From contig NW_025766026.1 of the NCBI RefSeq assembly GCF_003918875.1, positions 1,302,001-1,366,000 on the forward strand: 64,000 bases of DNA, given 5' to 3'. The translations under genes and the position numbers were made by a program. Below the pieces are notes generated by a model, which was not told the origin of the DNA, made no database searches, and saw only the letters and a list, made by a program, of their open reading frames with translations. Positions 4,051 to 62,752 of this stretch are shown here, one piece after another (position 1 is the stretch's first letter; every line of letters begins with the position of its first letter). This DNA comes from Haliotis rubra. Its lineage: Eukaryota.

Positions 4051-4973
4051 GGGTCTAGGACAATTGCCATCCGGACAATCGGCACCGGACTATTGCCACC
4101 TAGGACAATTGCCACCAAAAACATTTTAAAACATTCAGTTTCTTTAACAATTTTTATTGAGTTTGACATGGTAATCAATATCAAATAATAACATAATCTT
4201 CCATATTACCAACTTTCAACAGCTTAGATTTTGAGAAGGCGTTCGATACAGTATCTACTACAGATTTCTTTGATTATTGTCTTAGCTAAATCTGGTTTTG
4301 GTCCAGAAATCATTCGTTGGATAATGCCATATGAAACAACATCCTGTGTTATCCAACATGGTAAACTCTCTGATTTTTTCGTAAATGACCGAGGATGCAG
4401 GCAAGGACATCCTCTGTCACCGTACCTCTTTATTTTCGTCGCCGAAATGGTTGTATGATTAGAAGTAATAAGAACATAACAGTTATTGCTATTTACAAGA
4501 ACGAGTCTAAATTGAATCAATGTGCAGATGATACTGAATTATTTCTTGAAGAGAGTGAACAAAGCTTAAAGGCTGCTATTGATGAATTTTATACTTTTTA
4601 TAAATTGACAGGACTTCAAATAAACATTGATACGATTCTAGCAAATATACGATTAGGCACTCTAGAAATATCCTTTTTTTATTTACTCATAACTGAATGT
4701 CATTAGAATTTGTTGAAATCATGCAAAGGCTCTAGAATTTAAGTTAAGAATCTAAGAATCTAGTTGATCAAAGTCAGAATATGAATATACCAAGAAAACA
4801 CTGACTCTTCATCATCTAAAGTTGTGTTTATTGACAACCTGCATTCATTTTCTCAAATAAAATTACATTATATAAAACTTCTGGGTGGCAATAGTCCTCA
4901 CTATCATAGCAAAAATAACTGGGCGGCATTTGTTCAAGGTGGCAATTGCCCGAGTGGTAATTGTCCTTCTCCC
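4051..4973. mobile_element. TIR DNA element with GGACAATTGCC subterminal repeats, containing a LINE RT fragment
   Basis: Ends GGGTCTAGGACAATT and AATTGTCCTTCTCCC, inverted subterminal repeats, and TSD ATATACTT (8 bp, or 9 bp CATATACTT) on both sides. Confidence 0.75.
4215..4660 (+). pseudogene. Degenerate non-LTR (L1/Tx1-like) reverse transcriptase fragment
   Basis: Frameshifted motifs LDFEKAFDTV, GCRQGHPLSPYLF, QCADDT and TGLQIN. Confidence 0.85.
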
Positions 4974-8714: not shown

Positions 8715-9275
8715 ACCTGCATTTGTAAAATTAAAAATATGAACCCAATTTGTTTACATTGTTGAAGAAAAACTGTATCATGTTTTAGGTCCGGTAATAT
8801 GTACATATTCTTGCCTTCAAGTTTATAAGGCATGGAAACATCTGAAAATTGACATGTTTCCCCTTCTGGGGTAATGTCAAACTTTAGTAAACAGAAAATA
8901 TTAGAAATTTCAGTATCTACTGCAATTAATAGGAATGTATTAGGAATACTCGATAATCAAGGTATCAACTTTTGAATTTATTCCTGGAAATGTCTTTAAA
9001 TCCGGTCATAGCATACATGAAAAAGGTGCTTATGCATATACGATGAGCATATGTTTCAAAGATGTTGCTTCATATGAAATAAACGCCCTAACTTACTACA
9101 TATCGGGAAACATACGCAAATCCGGTCATAGCATATATTTCCTACTTAATTTGTATTTGTTTCAGTACCGTAAAATACGGATTTTGATCCTGTGATGGCT
9201 AAATAAGAACAGTGGCATTAACCTCGAGGTCTCTGAAAGGTTGTAATTGTGCTGGACTTCACGCATCCTTTGAAT

Positions 9276-36300: not shown

Positions 36301-39300
36301 ATTTTCATGGACAGCTTTCAGATACTACAATGAAACAACTTTTGTTTCATTATTAGTACAAAAGTACTTATAATCATTCTCCCATGGGCTTGTAGATATC
36401 TTAAATGCTTTGGACTGGAACCTGTAATTCTGACATTGCTAAGGGAGATAACTCCTCACAACAATACCGCTGGGCCACCTCAGTACGTTGACTGATGTTC
36501 ATGTAAGTTTCATTAACCTGCTACATTTCATTATGCTTGCTACAGCTGGTGAGTGCTAAGGAGGCGGTCAAGATGATGCTGGACCACATGACCAACCCGA
36601 AGACCACCACACATCTCAGCCTGTCTGCAGGTAAACCACCATTAGGAACCATAGGGCTGAGCTTTTGTTTGTTTGTTGTTTAACGCCGCACTCAGCAATA
36701 TTAAGGTTATATATGGTGGCGGTCTGTAAGTAATCGAGTCTGGACCAAGCAACCCAGTGATCAACAGCATGAGCATCTATGTACACATTTGGGATACTAT
36801 GACACGTGTCAACCAAGTCAGAGGACCTGACCACCTGATCCCGTTAGTCGCCTCTTACGACAAGCATGGGTCCTAGTGCTAAGCCCTGTGCTAACTTCAG
36901 TGCTAAACGTAGTGCTGTGATACTGCTTGACTGAAAATTAAATTTCGTTCTGCCTTCAACCTTCTGTTTTCCTGGGCGCAGCGCAATATAACCAGTTTAC
37001 CGGTATTTACCGGGTCAGACATGAAAATGATAGTATTGTAGTACACTGATTGAAAACCGGTATTTTGACATGCATTCGGAAAACTTCGTAACACTCGGAA
37101 GCCTTTGGATATTTCCTTGTTTCATTTGTGCCAGATATTATACACAGTTTTATTTTGTCATGATTAAAAGTTCTATTAAAGCTTAATCAAGCATAGTGAT
37201 TTTGTTGTGTTCATGCTTTATAAATCAAGCATTAACTTGATGATAAGTTGTTTTTTGTTTAAAAATACTTCTTGCAATATATTGCAATACATATCGCAAT
37301 ATATGCTTTCGCATTGCAATATATCGCAATATGAAAATTCTCTACAATACCCACCCCTACTGTTTTCTCAAACTGTGAGTGAGGGAGAGAATAAGAGTGA
37401 ATGAGTAAGTGTAAGACAGTGAATGACTTGCTGTCTCTGCAGCAGTTAAATATTACTGTTTTTTAAACGTTTATGGTATTTAAAATTATTTGAAAATTAA
37501 TTGAAAATTCCTCCAGCTGTCCCACCATTGACCATTGCTTGACTAAGGCCCACCTTTCACCTGCCTGTCCTCTGCATGTATTTTCCAGGTGACCGTGTGG
37601 CGTGTATGGTGAACAACTTGGGAGGAACATCCGTCCTGGAGCTCAACATTGTGGCACGAGAGGCAGTCTGCTACCTAGGTAGGGTTGGTGAAGAGAATCT
37701 CACCTGACTGTCTTCTGACATCAAATATACCTTAAAATAGATTTGAATCTTATAATATGTGTGCATATATATATATATATAATATATAACGTTTCACATC
37801 AGATGCTTGTTGTTTTAGATCAGCATCTCTCATTGTGCCATTGTGTTTGTGTTGCAGAGGGTCGAGGACTGAAAGTCGATCGCATGTACTGTGGGACGTT
37901 CATGACGTCGCTCCAGATGGCGGGCGTGTCCATCACCCTGCTTAAGCTGGATGACACATTGTGTCGCTGTCTAGGTAGGTGCCAGAGTGTCACTATGTGC
38001 AGTGTCAGATTGTGTCACTGTCAACTCGGACTGAAAGTCAAGGGAGCATGTATATGTAAATCTCACTCCAAATTTCAATGTGGCAGTCATACTGAAGAAG
38101 CTATTTATGTAACATAATGTATGATTGGTGGGTCTAAGAAAAATAAGTTGATACACAGATTCTCAAATCCACAGACCATAGGCGGATCCAGAAATTTAAT
38201 TTTCAAGGTGTTTGTGTGTGTGTGTGTGTGTGTGTGAACAACCCCACCTTGGCTCTGCCATTGCAAAACATTAAGTTCAATGTGGTCTTTAGTCATTTTA
38301 GTCATTTTCAGGGGGTTGGGGGTGTTTGTCTGAACCCCCCCTTTGGATCCGCCACTGCAGACACAGATTACGATTTCTCTGAGTCTGAAATCAGTCTATT
38401 GTGAGTGCCCATCAAAGATGTACGTAGATTACACTTAGATGTGACCTGTTGGACTGAATGTGTTCGCCAGATGCTCCAACATCAGCACCTGGGTGGTCGA
38501 AGCCGTACCTGCCTCGTGGAGTGACGGACAGACAGACACCAGGACAGATGACCATTGATGATTCAAGCACGGATACAGTGGTCAGTGGAGACGAGTCAGT
38601 CAGCTTGTCACAAGGTACATACACCATGGGAGAAATGATGTCAAGCTATCCACTGTGAACACGTTTTTATTAATCATCAAATGTGCCATTGTGTGATATA
38701 TACTAGAAATAATTGGATGAAATGTCTTCAGCCCATTTTGGTCAACTAGATTTACCACACTTGATTGTGAGAGAATGAATAAATGAACAGAAGAATAAAT
38801 GAACAGAAGAATAAATCATTATTGCTTTATGCTGCCTAAGCAATATTAAAGCTGTTCACAGTTTGTTGATAATGGCTCCAACATGTGGATGATAATGGCT
38901 CCAACATGTGGATGATAATGGCTCCAACATGTGGATGATAATGGCTCCAACATGTGGATGATAATGGCTCCAACATGTGGATGATAATGGCTCCAACATG
39001 TGGATGATAATGGCTCCAACATGTGGATAGAAAGAAGAATAAAGCATCAGAGCAAAGCTTACTTGCAATAAAATCTATATCGTGTCATAAACCTGTTTTC
39101 TTTCAAGAATGCTATTATCTTTTGATCATTTTATAATATCTTACTGTATGTGGAAGTCTATGAATGATTGTAGTTAGGGTTATATATTCCTTTAACAGGT
39201 GAGGTCAGGTGAAATTGGGTTTTACGCCGTGCTTGAGAATATTTCGCTCATATGACGACGTGCATGCGTGTGTATGTGTATGTGCGGCTGCTTGTACTAG

Positions 39301-51425: not shown

Positions 51426-51623
51426 NNNNNNNNNNNNNNNNNNNNNNNNNNNNNNNNNNNNNNNNNNNNNNNNNNNNNNNNNNNNNNNNNNNNNNNNNNN
51501 NNNNNNNNNNNNNNNNNNNNNNNNNNNNNNNNNNNNNNNNNNNNNNNNNNNNNNNNNNNNNNNNNNNNNNNNNNNNNNNNNNNNNNNNNNNNNNNNNNNN
51601 NNNNNNNNNNNNNNNNNNNNNNN
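51426..51623. other. Assembly gap (198 N)
   Basis: N run ending 120 bp upstream of the TKFC-B ATG. Confidence 1.
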
Positions 51624-51743: not shown

Positions 51744-54700
51744 ATGAGCGGACAGGGCAGCAAGAAGCTGATCAACTCCGTGGAGCGATGCGTGGACGAC
51801 ATGCTAGAGGGCTACGTGGCCCTCAACCCGGGGGTGCGTCTATTACACGGTCATCGTATCGTAATCCGGGCCGACGTCGAAGACTACGTGAAGTCCGGCA
51901 AGGTGGCTGTGTTGTGTGGGGGAGGGTCTGGGCACGAGCCAGCACAGGCAGGTAAAAACAAACGGAAGTATGCTACTCAAATCAAGTTAAGGAACACCAG
52001 CAATTGAAAGGCTGTATCTTGCAATATGTTTGTTTGTTTCTTGTTGAACAACGCACTCAGCAATATTCCAACTATATGGCGGAGGGCTGTAAAAAATCGA
52101 CTCTGGACCAGACAATCCAGTGATTACCACCATGAACATCGATCTACGCAATTGAGATATGATGTCATGTGTCAACCTAGTCAGCGAGCCTGACTACCCG
52201 ATCCCGTTAGTTGCCTCTTACGACAAGCATGGATTTGAAGAGGCCAATTCTAAGTCATATGAAACAATGTGTGTTAACTTTTTAAGTTCATTATACATCA
52301 TATACATTTTGCTATAACATTTTTGAAAGAAACATGACAAGAAATAACACATAATGCAGTTATCGTACGGTGCCCTGGACCAGGTAATAATGTAACTTAC
52401 GCGTCTTAATCATTCCAAATGAAGATGATACAATTATTTTGATTGTTTTCTGTGTACAAGGGTATGTTGGGCGGGGTTACCTGACGGCGTGTGTGGCAGG
52501 GTCGGTGTTCGCCTCTCCCCCACCCCAGGAAATCCTTCCGGCAATCAGAGCTGTGGCCAAACGGAACAAGGGTAGGTGTGGCGCTCTATGTTTGACCTTT
52601 ATAATTACTCGAGAGTCGTTGTTGTAAGAGTTAATTCTTTAGAAAACAAAACTACCCAAAGAGGAAAATTGAATATTTACCTAGGCCTTGTCTCTTTACT
52701 GTGTTTGTTTCCACCTCTGAAAATTCATGGAAGACAGACTATAGTCATCACTTACAGTCGTGTTTGGAGATCGGGATCAAACGCCTTTCTCTCAGGGACG
52801 GTAATATAAGATTGATTTGTGCAAGTTGGGCCCTGGCTGACCGCGTGTCTTAGTAGTAACGTGGATCTTTGTTCCAACAGTCAACAACTAATTCGCCTTG
52901 TCCTGACAATTATACAGAAGAATCAGTGGTTTTAGCAGGAAATAAGGACTGGTGTAAGTATTAAAGAATTTCCTACCACAAGATAACTCACATTCCCCGT
53001 GTGTTGTGACTGTGTCTGTACAGGCGGGTGTCTGTTGTCCGTCGCCAACTACACTGGAGACCGGCTCAACTTCGGACTGGCCTACGAGAAGGCTCGACAA
53101 GAAGGGATCAAAATCGCTATGATAGTTGTGGGCGAGGACTGCGCCGTGACGACAAACGACCGTACCGCGGGCAGGAGAGGACTTGTCGGATACATCGTTA
53201 CAAATAAAGTAATGTAACGTTTTGATTTTAACATTCTGACCAACGTCAAAATATTCGAGGTCACTATACATGGCATTTGCTTACATAAGAAAACTGTTTT
53301 GAATGGAAATAAAGAGTTTTTGTTTCTACAGTTAATGTTCTCAGGAAAACGAAGTCTCTATGTTGAGATGGGGCCTAGAGGTTAAAGCATTCGCTCATCA
53401 CGCCGAATACCCGGGTTCGATTCCCCACATGGGTACAATGTTTGAAGTCCATTTCTGGTGTCCCCCGTCGTGATATTGCTGGGACATTGCTAAAAGCGGC
53501 GTAAAACTAAACTCAATCACTATAACGAGGTCAGTGGTCTAAGTATCCGCGTTAAAACCCAGCCACCAACTGCTGGTTCCTGTACATAATTCGTTCACCG
53601 TTTGCTAGATTGCTGGAGCTTTGGCCGAGATGGGTCGGAGTCTGGAGGATATAGTTGAGATTACCACTGCTGCCACCAAACAGATGGGTAGGTGGAGAGG
53701 GGTGGCATCCCTGTGTTGACCATTTCAGAATAGGGTTTCACAGCGGAATAAACTACCGGGCGAAAGAAAGAAACTTGGATGTGACCTAAAGCTGACAAAT
53801 ATTATTAAGCTGACCTTTTATGACATACACAGTGATATAATGTTTGTCAAGATAACCGTATCAATGTATCAACATTGAATCACCATCTGCTGTTTGCTTC
53901 ATCTAAACATGGACGGATAACTTTTGCCCGGTATTTTATGCCCAACATTTCGGTAACGTGCAAAGTTGTCACCGCGGCCTATAAGTGATCTCAGAGTTAC
54001 GACTGACGCTACGGCCGTCCTAAAGTAAGGGAGGTACAACCGTTTTGGCTCTAAGATCGCTGGTTCAAGTCCAAGATTTCTGGTGATTATGGAGTTTGGC
54101 CTCCCAGAAAGGAATAAACTTAAGAGATATGCGAATCCTTGGGCATCCCCCCTACATTAATCTGGTTTTCCGTGATATGATGAAAATAACTTCAGGGACT
54201 ATCGGCTTGAGCTGGAGTGCGTGTTCCGCGCCAGGATCTGGACCCACGTTCAGCCTCGGGGATGATGAGATGGAGTTGGGTCTGGGGGCACACGGGGAGG
54301 CGGGCGTCAAGCGCATGAAGGTCTGTGGGCTTTTGCTACACTTGGCAACTGTATATATATACACAGTTTGGCAACATGAGAATCCATCAAACTTTATACT
54401 CTCAACAATCTGATGTCAAACTAAGATGTCTGTGCAATTATCATAATCATCAACTGCCAACTTGATATGCCAACTCCTTGGCATAGTGGATACAGCGCCT
54501 GCTCAGAGAGCAAAGGTCGTTGTTCGATCCCCGGCAGAGTCATAACGATACCTTTAAAATATGGTACTTATTGTTACCCCGCGCTTGGCGTTTAGATGGT
54601 AAAACAAGAACTGGTCGGCTCGGAGGTAGCATGCTGTGTCTGAGTAGGCTATCAATGTTAAACTGCGGAATGTTATCGCAGTAGGCCAGCACTATAGAAC

Positions 54701-57700
54701 CGTCGTGAAAACCTGTACAATCTGCAACACACTTACTCACGCACGACCATCATACGCCAATTTGCCTTACTGGGACATTGCTGTGTGTGCCGTAAAACAT
54801 CATTCACTCACTGTGACTAAATGAGGTTCCTGTTGGTAGATGACCAGTGCTAGGGAAGCAGTGACGATCATGATAGACCACATCACAAACCCGGACAACC
54901 CCACACACCTCAAGGTCACCAAAGGTGAGGGTCACGCCGACCTATTTCCCATCCGGTACAGGATGACATCAATACTTCTTCAATTACCACAATTAAAACT
55001 CGTACATTACTGTAATTAGAATACAACGCTTTGCAGCTTCTACACATGAGGGCAAAGAAATGCGGACCATTCATCTTAGAACGTCTGAATATATCATTAT
55101 CTTTGTAGATAAAACATACCATGATGCTAATGAGAATCCTCAACAAGATAGCCGTTCACGTCTTTTAGGTATACAGTGTAAATAAATAATTATTGTATCC
55201 TGCTCACAGGTGACCATGTTGCTGTCTTCGTCAACAACCTCGGCGCCACCACCGTCATGGAAATGAACATAGTCGTAGGAGAAGCAATTTTGTACCTTGG
55301 TGAGGCACATTATTTGTACATACTACTGAAAAAAACTTTAGTAATATGAAAGAAGTGGATGGTCCTTAACTTGTTTTGAGGAGGATGAACTCAGGTGTTG
55401 ATTTTCAGTTTAACCGATATGTATGTGACGTAGCAGAAGACGTCCACCACAATGCAGTGATTGGCTTAGTCATGTATAAGATATGGGACATTAAAACAAT
55501 ATTTTTATGAATGAACATCTACCTGATAGACATATTGCAGAACACATCGGTGTGTTGGTTGAACGATGTTACTGCCAGCGTTTCATGACGTCCATGGAGA
55601 TGGCGGGATTTTCCATCATGCTGCTGCTGCTTCTGAGTGACACTCTCACTCAGTGTCTGGGTGAGCTCGATCGCATGACACCAGCATGACACCAGCATGT
55701 CACCTACACAATACAGTATTCCTGTATTCCAGGCAACCACTATTGCCTTAAACCCGCCTTTCTCGGTCAGTGAATGTATTATGCAACTTTTAGCAATATG
55801 GCGGCGGTATCCTTTTTCGGGAATGGACTATATTGCTGGCTGCGGCATGAAACACACTGCAGTGAGTAAAATAACACCAGTTCCACCCCTCTTCACTCCG
55901 CCATGTCAGAACAGAAGCAGCCTCGGTTTCGTATAAGGTGTTTTTGTGTGGCGAGAGCACAACAAAGATATGACCGACAACTGGTCTATGTTAGAGCACA
56001 GGCAAACTGCAGCGCAAATAGGGTTGCGCAACAAAGAGAAAATGACCAGTTTTGCGAGTGTTGCGCAACCCTATTTGCGCTACAGTTTGTGAGTTACGAT
56101 CATTTTAGCGCAAAGGTCGCTTTGTGAAACTGCTTTCTGTACGAAACAGAGGCTTATGTTCTCTGGGCATGATAGGTGCGTGCATGCAAGAAGACACTAG
56201 TGCATGTCTGGTGTTGTAGATAGCCTGGGTATGCACGTGGATCGCGCGTACAACAGCCCCTTTAAAACCTCCCTGGAGATGGCTGGGATCTCCATCACCC
56301 TGCTTCGCTTGGACATAACACTAACCCAGGCTCTCGGTAAGCTAATGCAGCGTATTATTATGCTTTATATAACCAATCTATTATGATAAACGTCTTCGTC
56401 CCAATCACCTCAACAACTTCGTGTTGAACACTGTTTAAATTGCAATGAGCGAAAATAAGGAAGGGTTGAATTAGAGTAGAAATTTCACGACGTGTCGCTT
56501 CCGACAAGCAGCATTGGTGGTGAGGTTCAAATAATATATCAAAATAGTGCAAAAATATATTACACGGGGTAACTGTGAATGAAATGCATCATGATGGCAT
56601 GGCAACTGTTAGGTTTCATTTCAAGCATTTGTAGCAGCACGATATATAATCTTTGTAAAACTACCTGCACTGTTCACTTAATGACATACATGTATGTTAA
56701 AAAGAAACCTTGTATACTAGTACTTTGAAGTGAGGTGAGGTGAAATTGGTTTTAACGTCGTGCTTGAGAATATTTCGCTCATATGACGACGTGACTAGTA
56801 CTTTGAAATCGGAATTGGAACGCTTTTAGTGTTTTGTGAGTTTTGTGTTTTAATTATGAGTTCCTGGTTAGTTACCAGTATCCCTGATGAACTATATATA
56901 TGTGAACTGTATGTTGCATTATTGTATTACTCATGTATCTGATTGTAACCTTACCAATGGTATCACATTTTCTGGTGCAGATTTTCCAACAGACTCCCCA
57001 CATTGGCCACGCCCACTTCTACCACGTGGGGTGACTGACAGACAGACCCCGCCCCGTTTAGTGCTGGATTATATTGAGGACACGCCCAGTACGACCTTAG
57101 TGGGCGGGGCGGAGGTGGGATCAGGTACGCCATAGTATGATAATCGAAGAATTGTAAATATTATGTTGGTACCGACTTTTCATAAATCTTAAATGTGATG
57201 CTGAAATAAGTGAAGAGTTGGGTCCCTTTACAAGTGCTCGTGAAACATTACAGTTCAGTCATTTGTGGACATAATTGTGTCCTTTTTCCCTAAAATTTCG
57301 TCGTCATTGTAAACCAGGATATAGATTTTCGAAGCTCTCTTAGCGCTAAGATAGTCGTAAGTGCCATACATTAACATTAACTTGCGACTATCTTAGCGCT
57401 AAGAGAGCTTCGAAAATCTAGGCCTAACATATATAGGTCCTAACACTATAACCAGTGAAGATCTGGGTTAGAATTGGTCTTCAGCAATGCTTGTTGTACG
57501 TAAGAGGCGACTAACGGGATCGGGTGGTCAGGCTCGCTGACTTGGTTGACACATGTCATCGTATCCCAATTTGCCTAGATCGATGCTCATGATGTTGATC
57601 ACTTGATCGTCCGGTCCAATATTTGTCAATAATTGCTGACATCTGCAGGGATGATAAAGTCCATGCAGGTAGCAAAAGCACATAAGTCCCAATGGTCTCC

Positions 57701-60700
57701 AGTGTGGTGATGTGCCCTCAGTTTCTAGCAATATGTGGCCTGTTTTATGTTGTATTGCTGTGTATAGTAATACCTGTTTATGGTTTCACTGTAAATTTAA
57801 GTGTAAAGCTGTGCGAGTCTAGTTGTTTTAAAATAGTCTAAGTTAACTTTTATGAATAAATAGTTTTCAGAAATACTGCCGATATGACTTCACTCGCTCA
57901 CTCACGCATTGTTTTGTATTCACGTGTGTTCAACCCTTGTCACTTTCACCCATTTCAGATTATGCAGACAAACTGTACGAGATCATCGCGCACGTGTCCG
58001 AGAAACTTATGCAGAACGAGGCTCGACTGAACCAACTGGACACAACGGGGGGAGATGGGGACACGGGCAGTACATTGGCACGAGGAGCTAGGGGTGAGTG
58101 TCTGGAAAACCACAAAATATTTAAAATAATGAATAAAAAGGAATATTAGCTAAGTTATTTTGGTCGCCTGAATTTACGACAAGGATAAACCTGTGTCGTT
58201 TTAGACAGGGTAAGGACCGTTCCGCAGCTGCTGATATATACTACTCACACTTTGCTTAGGATCACAAAAATTCCCAACTTTACTTAAACGTAGATTAATA
58301 ATTTGAAATTGTATAATTTCATTTAAACTGGATAAATAATAATATGGTAACCCTTCTTTAGGCAAACAGCCACTTTAATCTAACCTTATGAACTTGATAC
58401 ATGAGTAACCATAAAAAATGGTTTTCATGCCACCAATAAACCATTTTGCAAATCATGGAACAAGTCCTTGACAAGTACACAACACCTGTCAATAGTAGGT
58501 ATTTGGATCCACAAGATGCAGTGGCATACTGAAACCTAGGACCCATGCTTACAATAGCTTAGATATTTAAACCAAATTAGACCCCACATCATAGGTTTCT
58601 GTTGAATCAATGACTTGATCCTTAGCAAAGTGTGAATAGTATAGTAGCCCTGAAGTATTTATCCCTTAAAGGAGGACTTAGCCAAGCCATGTTGGCAGTC
58701 CAGGCATCATTCAAATTCTTTTGTATGTAGGTAAGTTGTCATGCATTAAAAAACATTCAACAGGCTAATGTTTCCACGCTGATTTTTTCCACCTATTGTG
58801 TAACGTAGGTATTTAGGCAAAGTATGAGCTTTTTCAATTTGTACTGTTTCTTTTATTTTAGCCATTTTAAAGCAGCTTGGTAACAAAGACAAGCCCGGTT
58901 TGCCTGTTGATCAGCCATGTTCCCTGGTGCAAGCCCTGGCCTCCACGGCTGAAAACCAGATGGGGGGCGCGTCCGGAGCAGTGAGTTCTTTACTATTGAT
59001 GATTACAAATGCACCATTCTAATCGAAAATGTAGCGACAAAACCCTTTCCATACCAAACTGATTCCTATAATTGCCATGAAATGGGAAGAGTGACGAAGC
59101 CAGGTGCTCGCAAAGATGAGAGCCTACCTTGCTCAATACGTGCTTCCCGTGGCACAGCCTACAGTTCACCTGAAAAAAACCCACTGGAATATATGATACA
59201 CGCGAAATGGGGAATTGCATCGGACATCATTTTGGCCATCGCCATAATGGGTGCAGGACGTACAGATCACAGTAGCCTATACCGGCCTTGAGCCAGGTTT
59301 CACTGCTGTTGGTTGTGCGTCGTCGTGACGCGGATCGTTGCTTATGCTATCAACCACTTGTTTTCTAACCAAGACGTGCATAGTTACAGCTTAAATATTT
59401 CTGACACAAATGAACCTCAATTGTCATTGCAAATACTGCACGACGTGATTCATACCTTTAACACTGACTGACTGAGTTTGGTTTTAGCAATATTCCAGCA
59501 ATATCACGGCGGGGGACACCAGAAATGGGCTTCACACATTGTACCCATGTGGGGATTCGAACCCGGGTCTTCGGCGTGACGAGCCAACACTTTAACCACT
59601 AGGCTACCCCACCGCCCCTCATACCTTTAACAGCACGGGACGTCTGTACAGACGATCCTTCACTATACGAAGATCTGGCAGAGCCTAATGAACGTCTTTA
59701 TGGAATCTATTCGTATTTTCAAGGTCGAAGTGCACTTGCAGTACTTTACTGGAAGGTCGAAGTGCTCTTGCAATACTTTACTGGAAGGTCGAAGTGCTCT
59801 TGCAATACTTTACTGGAAGGTCGAAGTGCACTTGCAGCACTTTACTGGAAGGTCGAAGTGCACTTGCAGCACTTGCAGTACTTTACTGGAAGGAAAACGT
59901 TATAGAATAATATATTTCAAACTAGACTAAGAGATCGCACGAATGACAGACTGACATGTTCATGATGTACGTGATATGGATGGCATATTGTCTGAGGCTC
60001 CACTGTCATACTCTCGTAATCGTGGGTTCGAATCCTGAATCCTGATTAAAGATTTGGTTTGTCAGTCCTTACTGTTCAAATGTGGTTAACCAAAGTGTAA
60101 TAGTTCTCATACCTCCATCCCTTACTGTTCTCATTCAACTTTAACCAGACACGTGACGTAAGCAGAGTAATGCTCATAGGGGTGTTCGGGTAGCCTCGTG
60201 GTTAAAGCGCTCGCTCGTCACGCCGAAAACCCGGTTTCGATTACCCACATGGGTACGATAGGTGAAGCCCATTTCTGGTGTCCCCCGCTGTGATATAGCA
60301 GGAATATTGCTAAATGCGGCGTAAAACTAAACTCACTCACTCACAGCGTTAAAGCCAACCACCTCACTCGTCCAATGATACACTCTGTGACACTCTTCCC
60401 CAGCTGCACAGCCTACTGCTGACGTCAGCATCCAGCTGTCTGAAGGACTCCGTGACGGTAACGGCATGGCGCGACGCCCTGTCACAGGGGATAGACGCCG
60501 TCAGAAGGTGAGCCCATTGGTTTGACATTCGATCATAACCTCTGTACTTTTTTTATCTTCTTACCAAAGTCTTGTTGCTTCTTACATAACGTCTCTGTCT
60601 GCTGATATAGTGTATATAACTATATGCTAAATGATGTACTTTGCAGATATAGTGTATATAGCTAAATGCTAAAAGATGTACAATATAGCAATGGGGTATG

Positions 60701-62752
60701 TAACTGAATGCTAAATGGCGTATATTGTAGATATGGAGGCGCTGAGCCCGGAGACAGGACGATGGTGAGTAGTGACACAGACTTCTTAAGCGAAACTCTG
60801 CTATACATCTTCGATCGTTCACAGTGTTCCATATTTGTTAAGGATATCACTATTCCTTGGAGTAGGAACCACTTAGAGCCAAACTGTATGAACATCAGAG
60901 CATATCATAATAAATTCAAACAAAGTATATATCAATTCCAAATTTCTTATACCACCATTTCATACCTCGAAGGATGAAATTCATTTAGTATGCGAGACTT
61001 CTTGTGTATTCTGACAGTGATACAACCACCATCTGTATCGCAGAATAAAATAGTTTATCAAAACGAGAGGGGACGTAAGCCTATCTGTGCTCAACCCAAC
61101 AGCCTCAAGTCAAATAACTTGTGATGACATGTAGAAGTGATGACCGTGACTCGTCTCTCCACAGCTGGACCCCCTGTGTGCTGCGAGGGATGTGCTGTTA
61201 TCTAGACTGTCAGAAACAACGCCCATCCAAGCCTTCACGGAGGCGGTTCAGGTACGTCACAGGGTAGCATGTATCTACATGGGGAAATGTAGCATTCTTG
61301 ACAATGTCATGTCTTTTTACACTTTTCAAGGTTCAGTTTCAGTCAAATAAGACTGAAGGCTCCAGATACGGTTGTGTGGAACGTACGACTGTCCCCAAAT
61401 AACAACTATAAACAACTATAGGTCCCTACATATTCCTTCCTCATTCGTAATTTTTCGGTTGAGTCTCTGTTAACTCGAAGTATTTACGTCGGGCCCTTCA
61501 ACTTCGACACAACGGTGTTTGTATATTGATTCTAACAATGTAACGTTATATTTCATAGATACCAGGAGTCCCTAGCATAAGGAACTACATAGATGTAAGC
61601 ACTAGTTACAACTATCTAGAAATACATATTATACATTTCTGAATCAATACTCCATTCATTCTACTACTACAGCTACAGCTCCAACTACAACTACTGCTGT
61701 TGATACTACTACTTATACTACTGATTATAACGATATAACAAACAACAAACACAATACATTTATCATATAGCGCCTATTATCCACCATTAACACATAAACA
61801 ATATCTAACAGCATGCACACTGAAGATATGATGTACAGAACAGGTTTGCTGTTAGTTGGTGACCATGGATCGCTGTGATCTCGCATATCAGACATCAGGG
61901 TTCCGATCCACAAAACGTGCGTAACGTTACGACCTGTCGTAACTCTATAGTTGATCATAGGCTTACGAATGTCGTAGCGCTACGAACGCTTTGTGGATCG
62001 GGCCCCAGACTTGTAGTATACCGTAACCAATATTACTCTGGAATAAGATAGTTTTGAAAGATGAGGTTTTATTGCTGAGTTGAAAGCTGTCTGTGAGGGG
62101 ATTGCCCTGAACCACAGAGTTGGAACTGTTGGAGCGAAAACTTTGTCTACAGCGGCTCCCGTTCTCGGCTGCGTCAGAAGAACATCCACAGATCGAGATG
62201 TGTCGATTTTTTAGATATATACTCACGAGATCCACAAAGCCATTTATATGTAGGATAACTAATTTGGTGGTTTGTTAGTTGTTAAACGCCGCACTCAGCA
62301 ATATTCCAGCTATGTGGCGGCGGTCTGTAAATAAGTGAGTCTGGACAGGCAATCCAGTGATCAACAGCATGAGCATCATTGTACACAATTGGGATACGAT
62401 GACATGTGTCAACCAAGTAAGCGAGCCTGGCCACCCAATCCCGTTAGTCGCCTCTTAAAACAAGCATGGGTTACTGAAAACCAATTCTAACCCGGATCTT
62501 CACGGGTAGATTACGAATATGTTTTCGTGCATTTTTATGCTGTCCTGTCTTATGATTCTGTTCCTTAGATTACTGTAGAAGATATTTATCAATGGTCTGT
62601 TGCAGGCAGCAGAGAAGACAGCAGAGGCGACAGCGACAATGAGGGCATACGCTGGACGGGCCAGCTACGTTAACCCTGACCGTCTTACCCAGCCGGACCC
62701 CGGGGCTACGGGGGTGGCAATTTGGCTCAGGGCCATACTGGAGAAATTGTAA
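51744..62752 (+). CDS. TKFC: Triokinase/FMN cyclase-like, copy B (intact, about 589-590 aa, duplicated exon 9)
   Basis: Exons 51744-51951, 52461-52571, 53024-53208, 53609-53687, 54196-54320, 54840-54924, 55210-55299, [55541-55660 or 56220-56336], 56981-57124, 57959-58093, 58862-58980, 60404-60507, 60731-60764, 61165-61251, 62606-62752. Exon lengths match copy A apart from A's three indels, the fused exon 5/6, exon 9a and the last exon. The frame is open throughout. Confidence 0.93.
55541..55660 (+). CDS. TKFC-B alternative exon 9a (numbered by homology to copy A)
   Basis: ttgcag|...|gtgagc, phase 1-1, 120 nt. Encodes [40 protein letters not shown], homologous to copy A exon 9. Confidence 0.75.
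56220..56336 (+). CDS. TKFC-B alternative exon 9b
   Basis: ttgtag|...|gtaagc, phase 1-1, 117 nt (same length as copy A exon 9). Encodes [39 protein letters not shown]. Confidence 0.8.
59720..59892. repeat. 32-bp minisatellite, about 5 copies
   Basis: Unit AAGGTCGAAGTGCACTTGCAGTACTTTACTGG. Confidence 0.9.
62265..62506 (-). mobile_element. SINE-like family C (about 240 bp, TGTCGTAAGAGGCGACTAA hairpin, (AAAC)n tail); about 20 full or decayed copies
   Basis: Copies at about 10410, 16045, 17270, 21455, 23035, 26935, 30750, 36665, 42275, 44235, 52025 and 57453, among others. It shares the GGAATATTGCT...GGCGTWAAAC 3' end with family A. Confidence 0.8.

Follow-up and report, generated by a model that had tools for sequence, protein, structure and literature searches.

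A conserved pair of tandemly duplicated exons in an abalone TKFC gene, probably used as alternatives in two full-length isoforms

The window analysed here is a stretch of 64,000 nucleotides of the Haliotis rubra contig NW_025766026.1, and all positions given below are counted from its first letter. Two tandem genes for triokinase/FMN cyclase (TKFC) lie on its + strand, TKFC-A at approximately 30.4-43.4 kb and TKFC-B at 51.7-62.8 kb. Both RefSeq isoforms of TKFC-B map exactly onto the window, XP_046567380.1 (isoform X1, 590 aa) with 590 of 590 residues and XP_046567382.1 (isoform X2, 589 aa) with 589 of 589. The difference between these isoforms is confined to aa 295-333, a segment that is encoded by exon 9a in X1 and by exon 9b in X2 and in which 19 of the 39-40 residues are unlike. 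The features concerned, and the evidence used to place them, are as follows.

51744..62752, + strand: coding span of TKFC-B, 15 coding exons plus the alternative exon (exact RefSeq protein mapping; Dak1 matches)
55210..55299, + strand: constitutive exon 8, upstream of the pair (contig joints 54922>55208 and 55298>55540, GT..AG; protein mapping)
55541..55660, + strand: exon 9a, 120 nt, phase 1-1, in isoform X1 (translation, Dak1 match, protein mapping, spliced contigs)
55661..56219, + strand: intron between 9a and 9b, 559 nt, canonical GT-AG (sequence)
56220..56336, + strand: exon 9b, 117 nt, phase 1-1, in isoform X2 (translation, Dak1 match, RefSeq protein mapping)
56337..56980, + strand: intron between 9b and exon 10 (sequence)
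56981..57124, + strand: constitutive exon 10, downstream of the pair, encoding the start of the K-L interdomain linker (joint 55659>56980; protein mapping)
37858-37974, + strand: single homologous exon of TKFC-A (blastp and mapping)

Two further observations concern the quality of the assembly around these genes. A run of 198 N (51426-51623), which is either an assembly gap or a masked stretch, precedes the start codon of TKFC-B by about 120 nt. Exons 3 and 5 of TKFC-A contain two single-base frame breaks (33660 and 35202) when set against the RefSeq 'LOW QUALITY PROTEIN' model; both sit in homopolymer runs, GGGGG and CCC, and have the appearance of indel errors in the assembly as opposed to the marks of a dead gene.

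An earlier note on this DNA, made from the letters alone, had described two homologous but strongly diverged exons in TKFC-B at a place where TKFC-A has one. Reading and translating the window reproduced this description exactly, including the coordinates, the lengths of 120 and 117 nt, phase 1-1, the AG/GT sites, the lack of stops and the translations that the note had quoted. An AG stands before each exon and GT(G/A)AG after it, and with one base contributed by the upstream exon both can be read through without a stop. In a blastp comparison among all open segments of the window, the peptides of 9a and 9b share 52% identity (E 2.5e-7), and in a profile search each matches Pfam Dak1 positions 266-305/306 with an E of ~2e-6. 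This peptide identity, together with the match to the same stretch of the profile, indicates that 9a and 9b arose by genuine duplication of an exon and that their similarity is not fortuitous. At the nucleotide level the two are only 54-59% identical, and this divergence, along with the orthology of each copy across species, rules out an assembly artefact or a recent duplication. TKFC-A does have only the single exon listed above.

The remark that both exons had changed the Gly of the G-x-F-M-T-S-L motif also held: this column is at least 90% Gly in 50 metazoan TKFCs, and is occupied by Gln or His in 9a and by Ser in 9b. Different ancestral features are retained by the two copies, S-I-T-L-L-(K/R)-L-D by 9b and both Y-C and Q-C-L by 9a. 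At 55619-55621, within 9a, the reference has a CTG run of five Leu codons where three of the four read runs and the other abalones have four. The additional codon, which is in frame regardless, could reflect polymorphism, a difference between species or a minor error in the assembly.

The exons of TKFC-B tile positions 1-306 of Dak1 (PF02733), and the profile match and the presence of the K-domain catalytic residues place the protein in the Dak1/DhaK family. In an alignment of the full protein with the dihydroxyacetone kinase of C. freundii (1UN9; E 6e-80), L-G-A-H-G-E-A-G is aligned and the swapped segment falls at the end of the K domain. X1 and X2 were modelled with AlphaFold, from an alignment of 50 sequences in each case. 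The models had mean pLDDT values of 90.9 and 91.1, with 84-97 in the swapped block, and present the same secondary structure over the segment. This consists of the end of helix 280-296, strand 300-307, the conserved F-x-T-S-x-E-M-A-G loop, strand 317-323/324 and helix 327/328-334/335, and is followed from residue 336 to about 380 by a linker, encoded from exon 10, of some 45 residues that are modelled without secondary structure. Within the substrate-binding K (Dak1) domain, the swapped segment makes up the last strand, the conserved T-S-(L/M)-E-M-A-G loop, a strand and a helix, and it directly precedes the linker to the ATP-binding L domain. TKFC is an intertwined L2-K1-K2-L1 dimer whose active sites lie between the K and L domains of different chains and whose activity needs domain closure (PMC6429413). 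The swap may tune K-domain stability or K-L closure while the catalytic residues are unchanged.

Transcript evidence came from two small RNA-like runs, which were examined as contigs together with two DNA runs. Contigs of the RNA-like runs contain exons only, with GT..AG joints at 54922>55208, 55298>55540 and 55659>56980. The joint from exon 8 to 9a (55298>55540) is present in both runs, and that from 9a to exon 10 (55659>56980), with 9b skipped, is present in one run at a depth of 3; 9a is used and 9b is skipped. Relative to the window, the 9a sequences carry two synonymous substitutions (in four of four and three of four runs) and a one-codon deletion in the Leu run (three of four). Exon 9b had a depth of zero in both RNA-like runs, in which expression was low and contigs show presence, not absence. 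A search for transcript-derived protein fragments across exons 8-9-10 found none, a blank that says little. RefSeq models from four abalone species include none with both exons and none with neither. Of the two spliced isoforms that the earlier note had proposed, the one with 9a is thus backed by splice joints on both sides of the exon, and both are backed by the substitution in RefSeq and by the retention and constraint set out below; for 9b the splice pattern comes from the RefSeq isoform models, and its use in vivo is suggested by these automated predictions and by the constraint on its sequence.

The same substitution is annotated in other abalones. H. rufescens and H. cracherodii have X1 and X2 isoforms of equal length that are unlike only in the 9a/9b exon, and one H. 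asinina gene has an isoform with 9a and an isoform with 9b, whose N-termini are also unlike. At the genomic loci of the four species, the order is 9a then 9b, the AG/GT sites and phase are kept, and the intron between the exons measures 559-815 nt. These loci have the hallmarks of tandem exon duplication, with homologous neighbours of near-equal length, in phase 1-1 and with AG/GT sites in all four species. Orthologues of 9a were found in three further species and orthologues of 9b at all abalone loci. The deep-sea vetigastropod Gigantopelta has one exon only at this position.

In a tree of these exons, the orthologues of 9a grouped in one clade (100/98) and those of 9b in a second (98/93), and one origin of 9a plus 9b was not rejected (p-AU 0.59). 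The separation of the two clades indicates that the duplication predates the abalone radiation. Synonymous sites are saturated between 9a and 9b (pS 0.69-0.82), and dS between species is 0.33-0.58, which indicates a duplication several times older than that radiation. A further arrangement occurs in H. asinina, where three tandem TKFC-B genes lie at 39.85-39.90 Mb of CM074533.1 and only one has kept 9a. The other two paralogues have lost the body of 9a through an identical deletion, which spares 60 nt of upstream flank and 7 nt of exon, and 9b is their sole copy.

The earlier note had proposed that retention of both exons in related species, and their dN/dS, be checked. Both exons are intact in splice sites and frame in the four abalone species, and dN/dS, computed from exact mapping of each species' own protein, was 0.26-0.75 for 9a and 0.17-0.34 for 9b, which points to constraint on both. 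For the rest of the gene it was 0.09-0.11 in five of the six species pairs and 0.21 in the closest pair, H. rufescens-H. cracherodii. In the N-versus-S test, 9b gave a significant contrast (p 0.001-0.03) and 9a a weaker one (p 0.02-0.7). Pairwise divergence (K) was 0.10-0.13 for 9a and 0.15-0.23 for 9b as against 0.31-0.92 for aligned intron columns (Fisher p for exon versus intron from 0.005 to 1e-14; for 9b, 0.005 to 1e-9). The rates of 9a and 9b equal those of the adjacent constitutive exons and are 2.5-5 times below those of introns. Gap columns number in the hundreds in the introns, with none in 9b and one in-frame Leu codon in 9a. Three-way nucleotide identity is 0.77-0.93 for exons 8, 9a, 9b and 10 and 0.0-0.73, mostly 0.1-0.6, for introns. 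Judged from these substitution patterns, both copies are kept under purifying constraint in related species. One stretch of intron also stands out in the comparison.

56590..56680, + strand: conserved intronic block downstream of 9b (60-73% three-way identity vs 10-50% elsewhere in introns; four abalone species)

These data bear on whether both exons are functional. Exon 9b could be an unused relic, with the X2 isoforms being annotation artefacts spread by homology from one annotation run to another, a proposal that accords with the zero RNA coverage in the two RNA-like runs and with the failure to find transcript-derived protein fragments. We regard this as very improbable, as it is at odds with the low dN/dS and N-versus-S results for 9b, with its conserved splice sites, with the absence of indels where introns have many and with a divergence below that of intron columns. 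Moreover, 9b retains canonical family residues and is the sole remaining copy in two H. asinina genes. The same sequence constraint led us to reject the view of 9b as a pseudo-exon.

The converse proposal, that 9a is decaying and that 9b is the ancestral and essential exon, draws on the loss of 9a from two H. asinina genes, on a dN/dS that is higher and less clearly below 1 than that of 9b and on the additional Leu codon of the H. rubra reference, which three of the four runs lack. However, 9a is the exon observed spliced in RNA-like contigs, its nucleotide sequence changes more slowly than any other part of the region, and its reading frame and splice sites are intact in four species; there is accordingly only a slight chance that decay accounts for the data. 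The low rate of synonymous change in 9a fits exonic splicing signals better than decay, and we infer that such signals may lie within this alternative exon.

We consider it probable that 9a and 9b form a functional alternative pair, with one exon per mRNA and two full-length isoforms. An old tandem duplication inside abalone TKFC-B would have given rise to 9a and 9b, and each mRNA would take one exon to encode either X1 (590 aa, with 9a) or X2 (589 aa, with 9b). Exclusive use would follow from the nature of the segment, a core structural element required exactly once, and the two versions could then differ in their effects on the K domain or on its closure with L.

Exclusive use might be enforced by the reading frame, by steric or spliceosomal incompatibility or by RNA structure. 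Exon lengths of 120 and 117 nt are each divisible by three, and the codons at the junctions remain GAT/GAA, so that double inclusion or skipping would be in frame and escape nonsense-mediated decay. The 9a-9b intron, at 559-815 nt, leaves too much room for exclusion by steric hindrance, and every donor is a U2 site of the GTRAG type. No docking/selector stem of at least 8 bp was found in homologous columns, although this search covered three lineages with gappy intron alignments and had low power. With RNAalifold on four species, the only long-range helices were short, exonic or AU/GU-rich. Neither of two such helices is taken as evidence for an exclusion device. One is an 11-bp pairing of exon 8 with 9a, confined to conserved coding sequence; the other spans 8 bp, is AU/GU-rich and lies in the intron between 9b and exon 10. 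The exon 8 stretch (55221-55231) is complementary to 55594-55604 of 9a, the M-E-M-A-G codons, over 11 bp with four G-U pairs, and also pairs over 10 bp with the matching motif of 9b (56270-56280). This complementarity may be coincidence, since it lies wholly in conserved coding sequence.

The 9a-9b intron of H. rubra folds far better than its shuffles (z -6.9), and its ends are complementary at -40 kcal/mol, a value reached by 1.7% of shuffles. Complementarity of the intron ends is absent in H. rufescens, H. cracherodii and H. asinina. The intron also contains the following element.

56003..56089, no strand assigned: 31-bp inverted repeat (hairpin) in the 9a-9b intron, arms 97% complementary (depth ~95,000 in DNA runs)

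This hairpin was not found in the orthologous 9a-9b introns and is the source of the strong fold in H. rubra; it is a high-copy repeat peculiar to this species rather than a conserved regulator. Self-folding of the 9a-9b intron is thereby ruled out as a conserved mechanism, as both the hairpin and the end complementarity are confined to H. rubra. A second repeat, of very high copy number (summed depth of millions in DNA runs), occupies 56730-56793 in the intron flanking 9b and is present in many RNA-like contigs. As no structural, frame or steric device was found, the choice between the exons is most likely regulated by trans-acting splicing factors.

The same findings leave room for a looser form of splicing, in which both exons are functional, one (probably 9a) is the default and the other behaves like a cassette exon, with appreciable amounts of mRNA containing both or neither. 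Such splicing would incur no frame penalty and would meet no steric or spliceosomal incompatibility at U2-type sites separated by 559-815 nt, and conserved competing RNA structures were not found. We nevertheless judge it unlikely. The RefSeq models of four species never hold both exons or neither, one contig links 9a straight to exon 10, and the segment supplies the K domain with two core strands and a helix, so that products with two copies or none would probably misfold.

Mutually exclusive exons derived from tandem duplication have been defined for the purpose of prediction (PMC3228551) and reviewed (PMC9013439, PMC9741552). Like known pairs of this type, 9a and 9b are adjacent, homologous, of near-equal length, in the same phase, with splice sites that are kept, conserved between species and responsible for the same structural element. 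Set against known pairs, their exclusivity is putative, their lengths are multiples of three and competing RNA structures were not found. The RefSeq X1 and X2 of H. rubra, and their equivalents in H. rufescens, H. cracherodii and H. asinina, are the same object as the pair in the window; these are automated predictions, and no source names the abalone pair as mutually exclusive exons. A search of the full-text literature found no paper on mutually exclusive exons in TKFC or dihydroxyacetone kinase, or on Haliotis triokinase. A 2026 review of TKFC describes only a human truncating event in the last intron, and the terms 'invertebrate', 'mollus', 'paralog' and 'duplicat' are absent from its text. 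The view in the earlier note that no such pair was known in TKFC is therefore borne out for papers but not for databases, as RefSeq lists the abalone isoforms and, in bivalves and Lingula, a pair at another exon. The abalone exon pair is thus already in automated annotation and is a real but ordinary case of alternative splicing that is undescribed in papers.

Alternative splicing has comparable outcomes elsewhere in this area of metabolism. Ketohexokinase exists as KHK-A and KHK-C, made by alternative use of the adjacent homologous exons 3A and 3C, and the kinetics of these isoforms are known. As in abalone TKFC, one internal homologous exon is swapped in an enzyme of the fructose/triose pathway, but ketohexokinase belongs to another protein family and the gene in question is a vertebrate one. 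KHK-A is named as a splice isoform in PMC13663913. In human TKFC, an alternative 3' splice site in the last intron truncates the L domain and abolishes activity (PMC11506722; PMC13663913). This event is, like that of abalone, alternative splicing of TKFC, but unlike that of abalone it does not involve a homologous exon swap.

A closer parallel is provided by TKFC of seven bivalve genera (Pecten, Ylistrum, Mercenaria, Mya, Ruditapes, Dreissena and Mytilus) and the brachiopod Lingula. RefSeq X1 and X2 isoforms in these genera are of equal length and unlike in a single exon, exon 3, which corresponds to H. rubra aa 107-167 and encodes the N-Y-T-G-D-R substrate-binding segment. The two exon-3 copies are in tandem in one gene of Pecten maximus (4257-4442 and 8846-9034 of the locus examined). 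In abalone, TKFC-A has an 'X1-type' exon 3 and TKFC-B an 'X2-type' exon 3, and in other gastropods and in oysters the two types similarly sit in separate genes. An exon-3 tree placed all X2-type exons, both those used as alternatives and those that stand alone in a paralogue, on one side of a branch, with a support of 88/89 that is moderate, that derives from 62 columns and that applies to a group defined after the sequences had been seen. A backbone tree built without exons 3 and 9 placed oyster gene 2 beside oyster gene 1 (99*). These phylogenetic patterns suggest an old exon-3 alternative pair that was later resolved into separate paralogous genes. The exon-3 pair resembles the abalone exon-9 pair in gene family and type of event, with one exon swapped, but involves another exon and is much older.

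It is possible, though we advance this only tentatively, that exon pairs in lophotrochozoan TKFC repeatedly arise and later resolve into single-exon paralogues, with the exon-9 pair as the most recent case, and that the isoforms are measurably unlike in kinetics, stability or partners. Under such a process, a pair would have arisen at exon 3 anciently and at exon 9 in the abalone lineage, and the resolved cases would include gastropod TKFC-A and TKFC-B, oyster genes 1 and 2 and the 9b-only copies of H. asinina.

Here we have characterized a pair of duplicated exons which, taken alone, is a routine annotation-level fact already present in RefSeq. The pair adds a well-supported homologous exon substitution in an enzyme of central carbohydrate metabolism, for which the only alternative splicing described in the literature is the human truncating event. 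As the swapped segment adjoins the hinge or linker that has to move for catalysis, the natural isoforms would be a ready-made experiment on the effect of this region on activity. In combination with the bivalve exon-3 pair and the 9b-only genes of H. asinina, the abalone pair provides a tractable system for studying how splice isoforms become separate genes. If the recurrent process is borne out, TKFC would be a natural model in which to follow a metabolic enzyme as it moves between alternative splicing and gene duplication.
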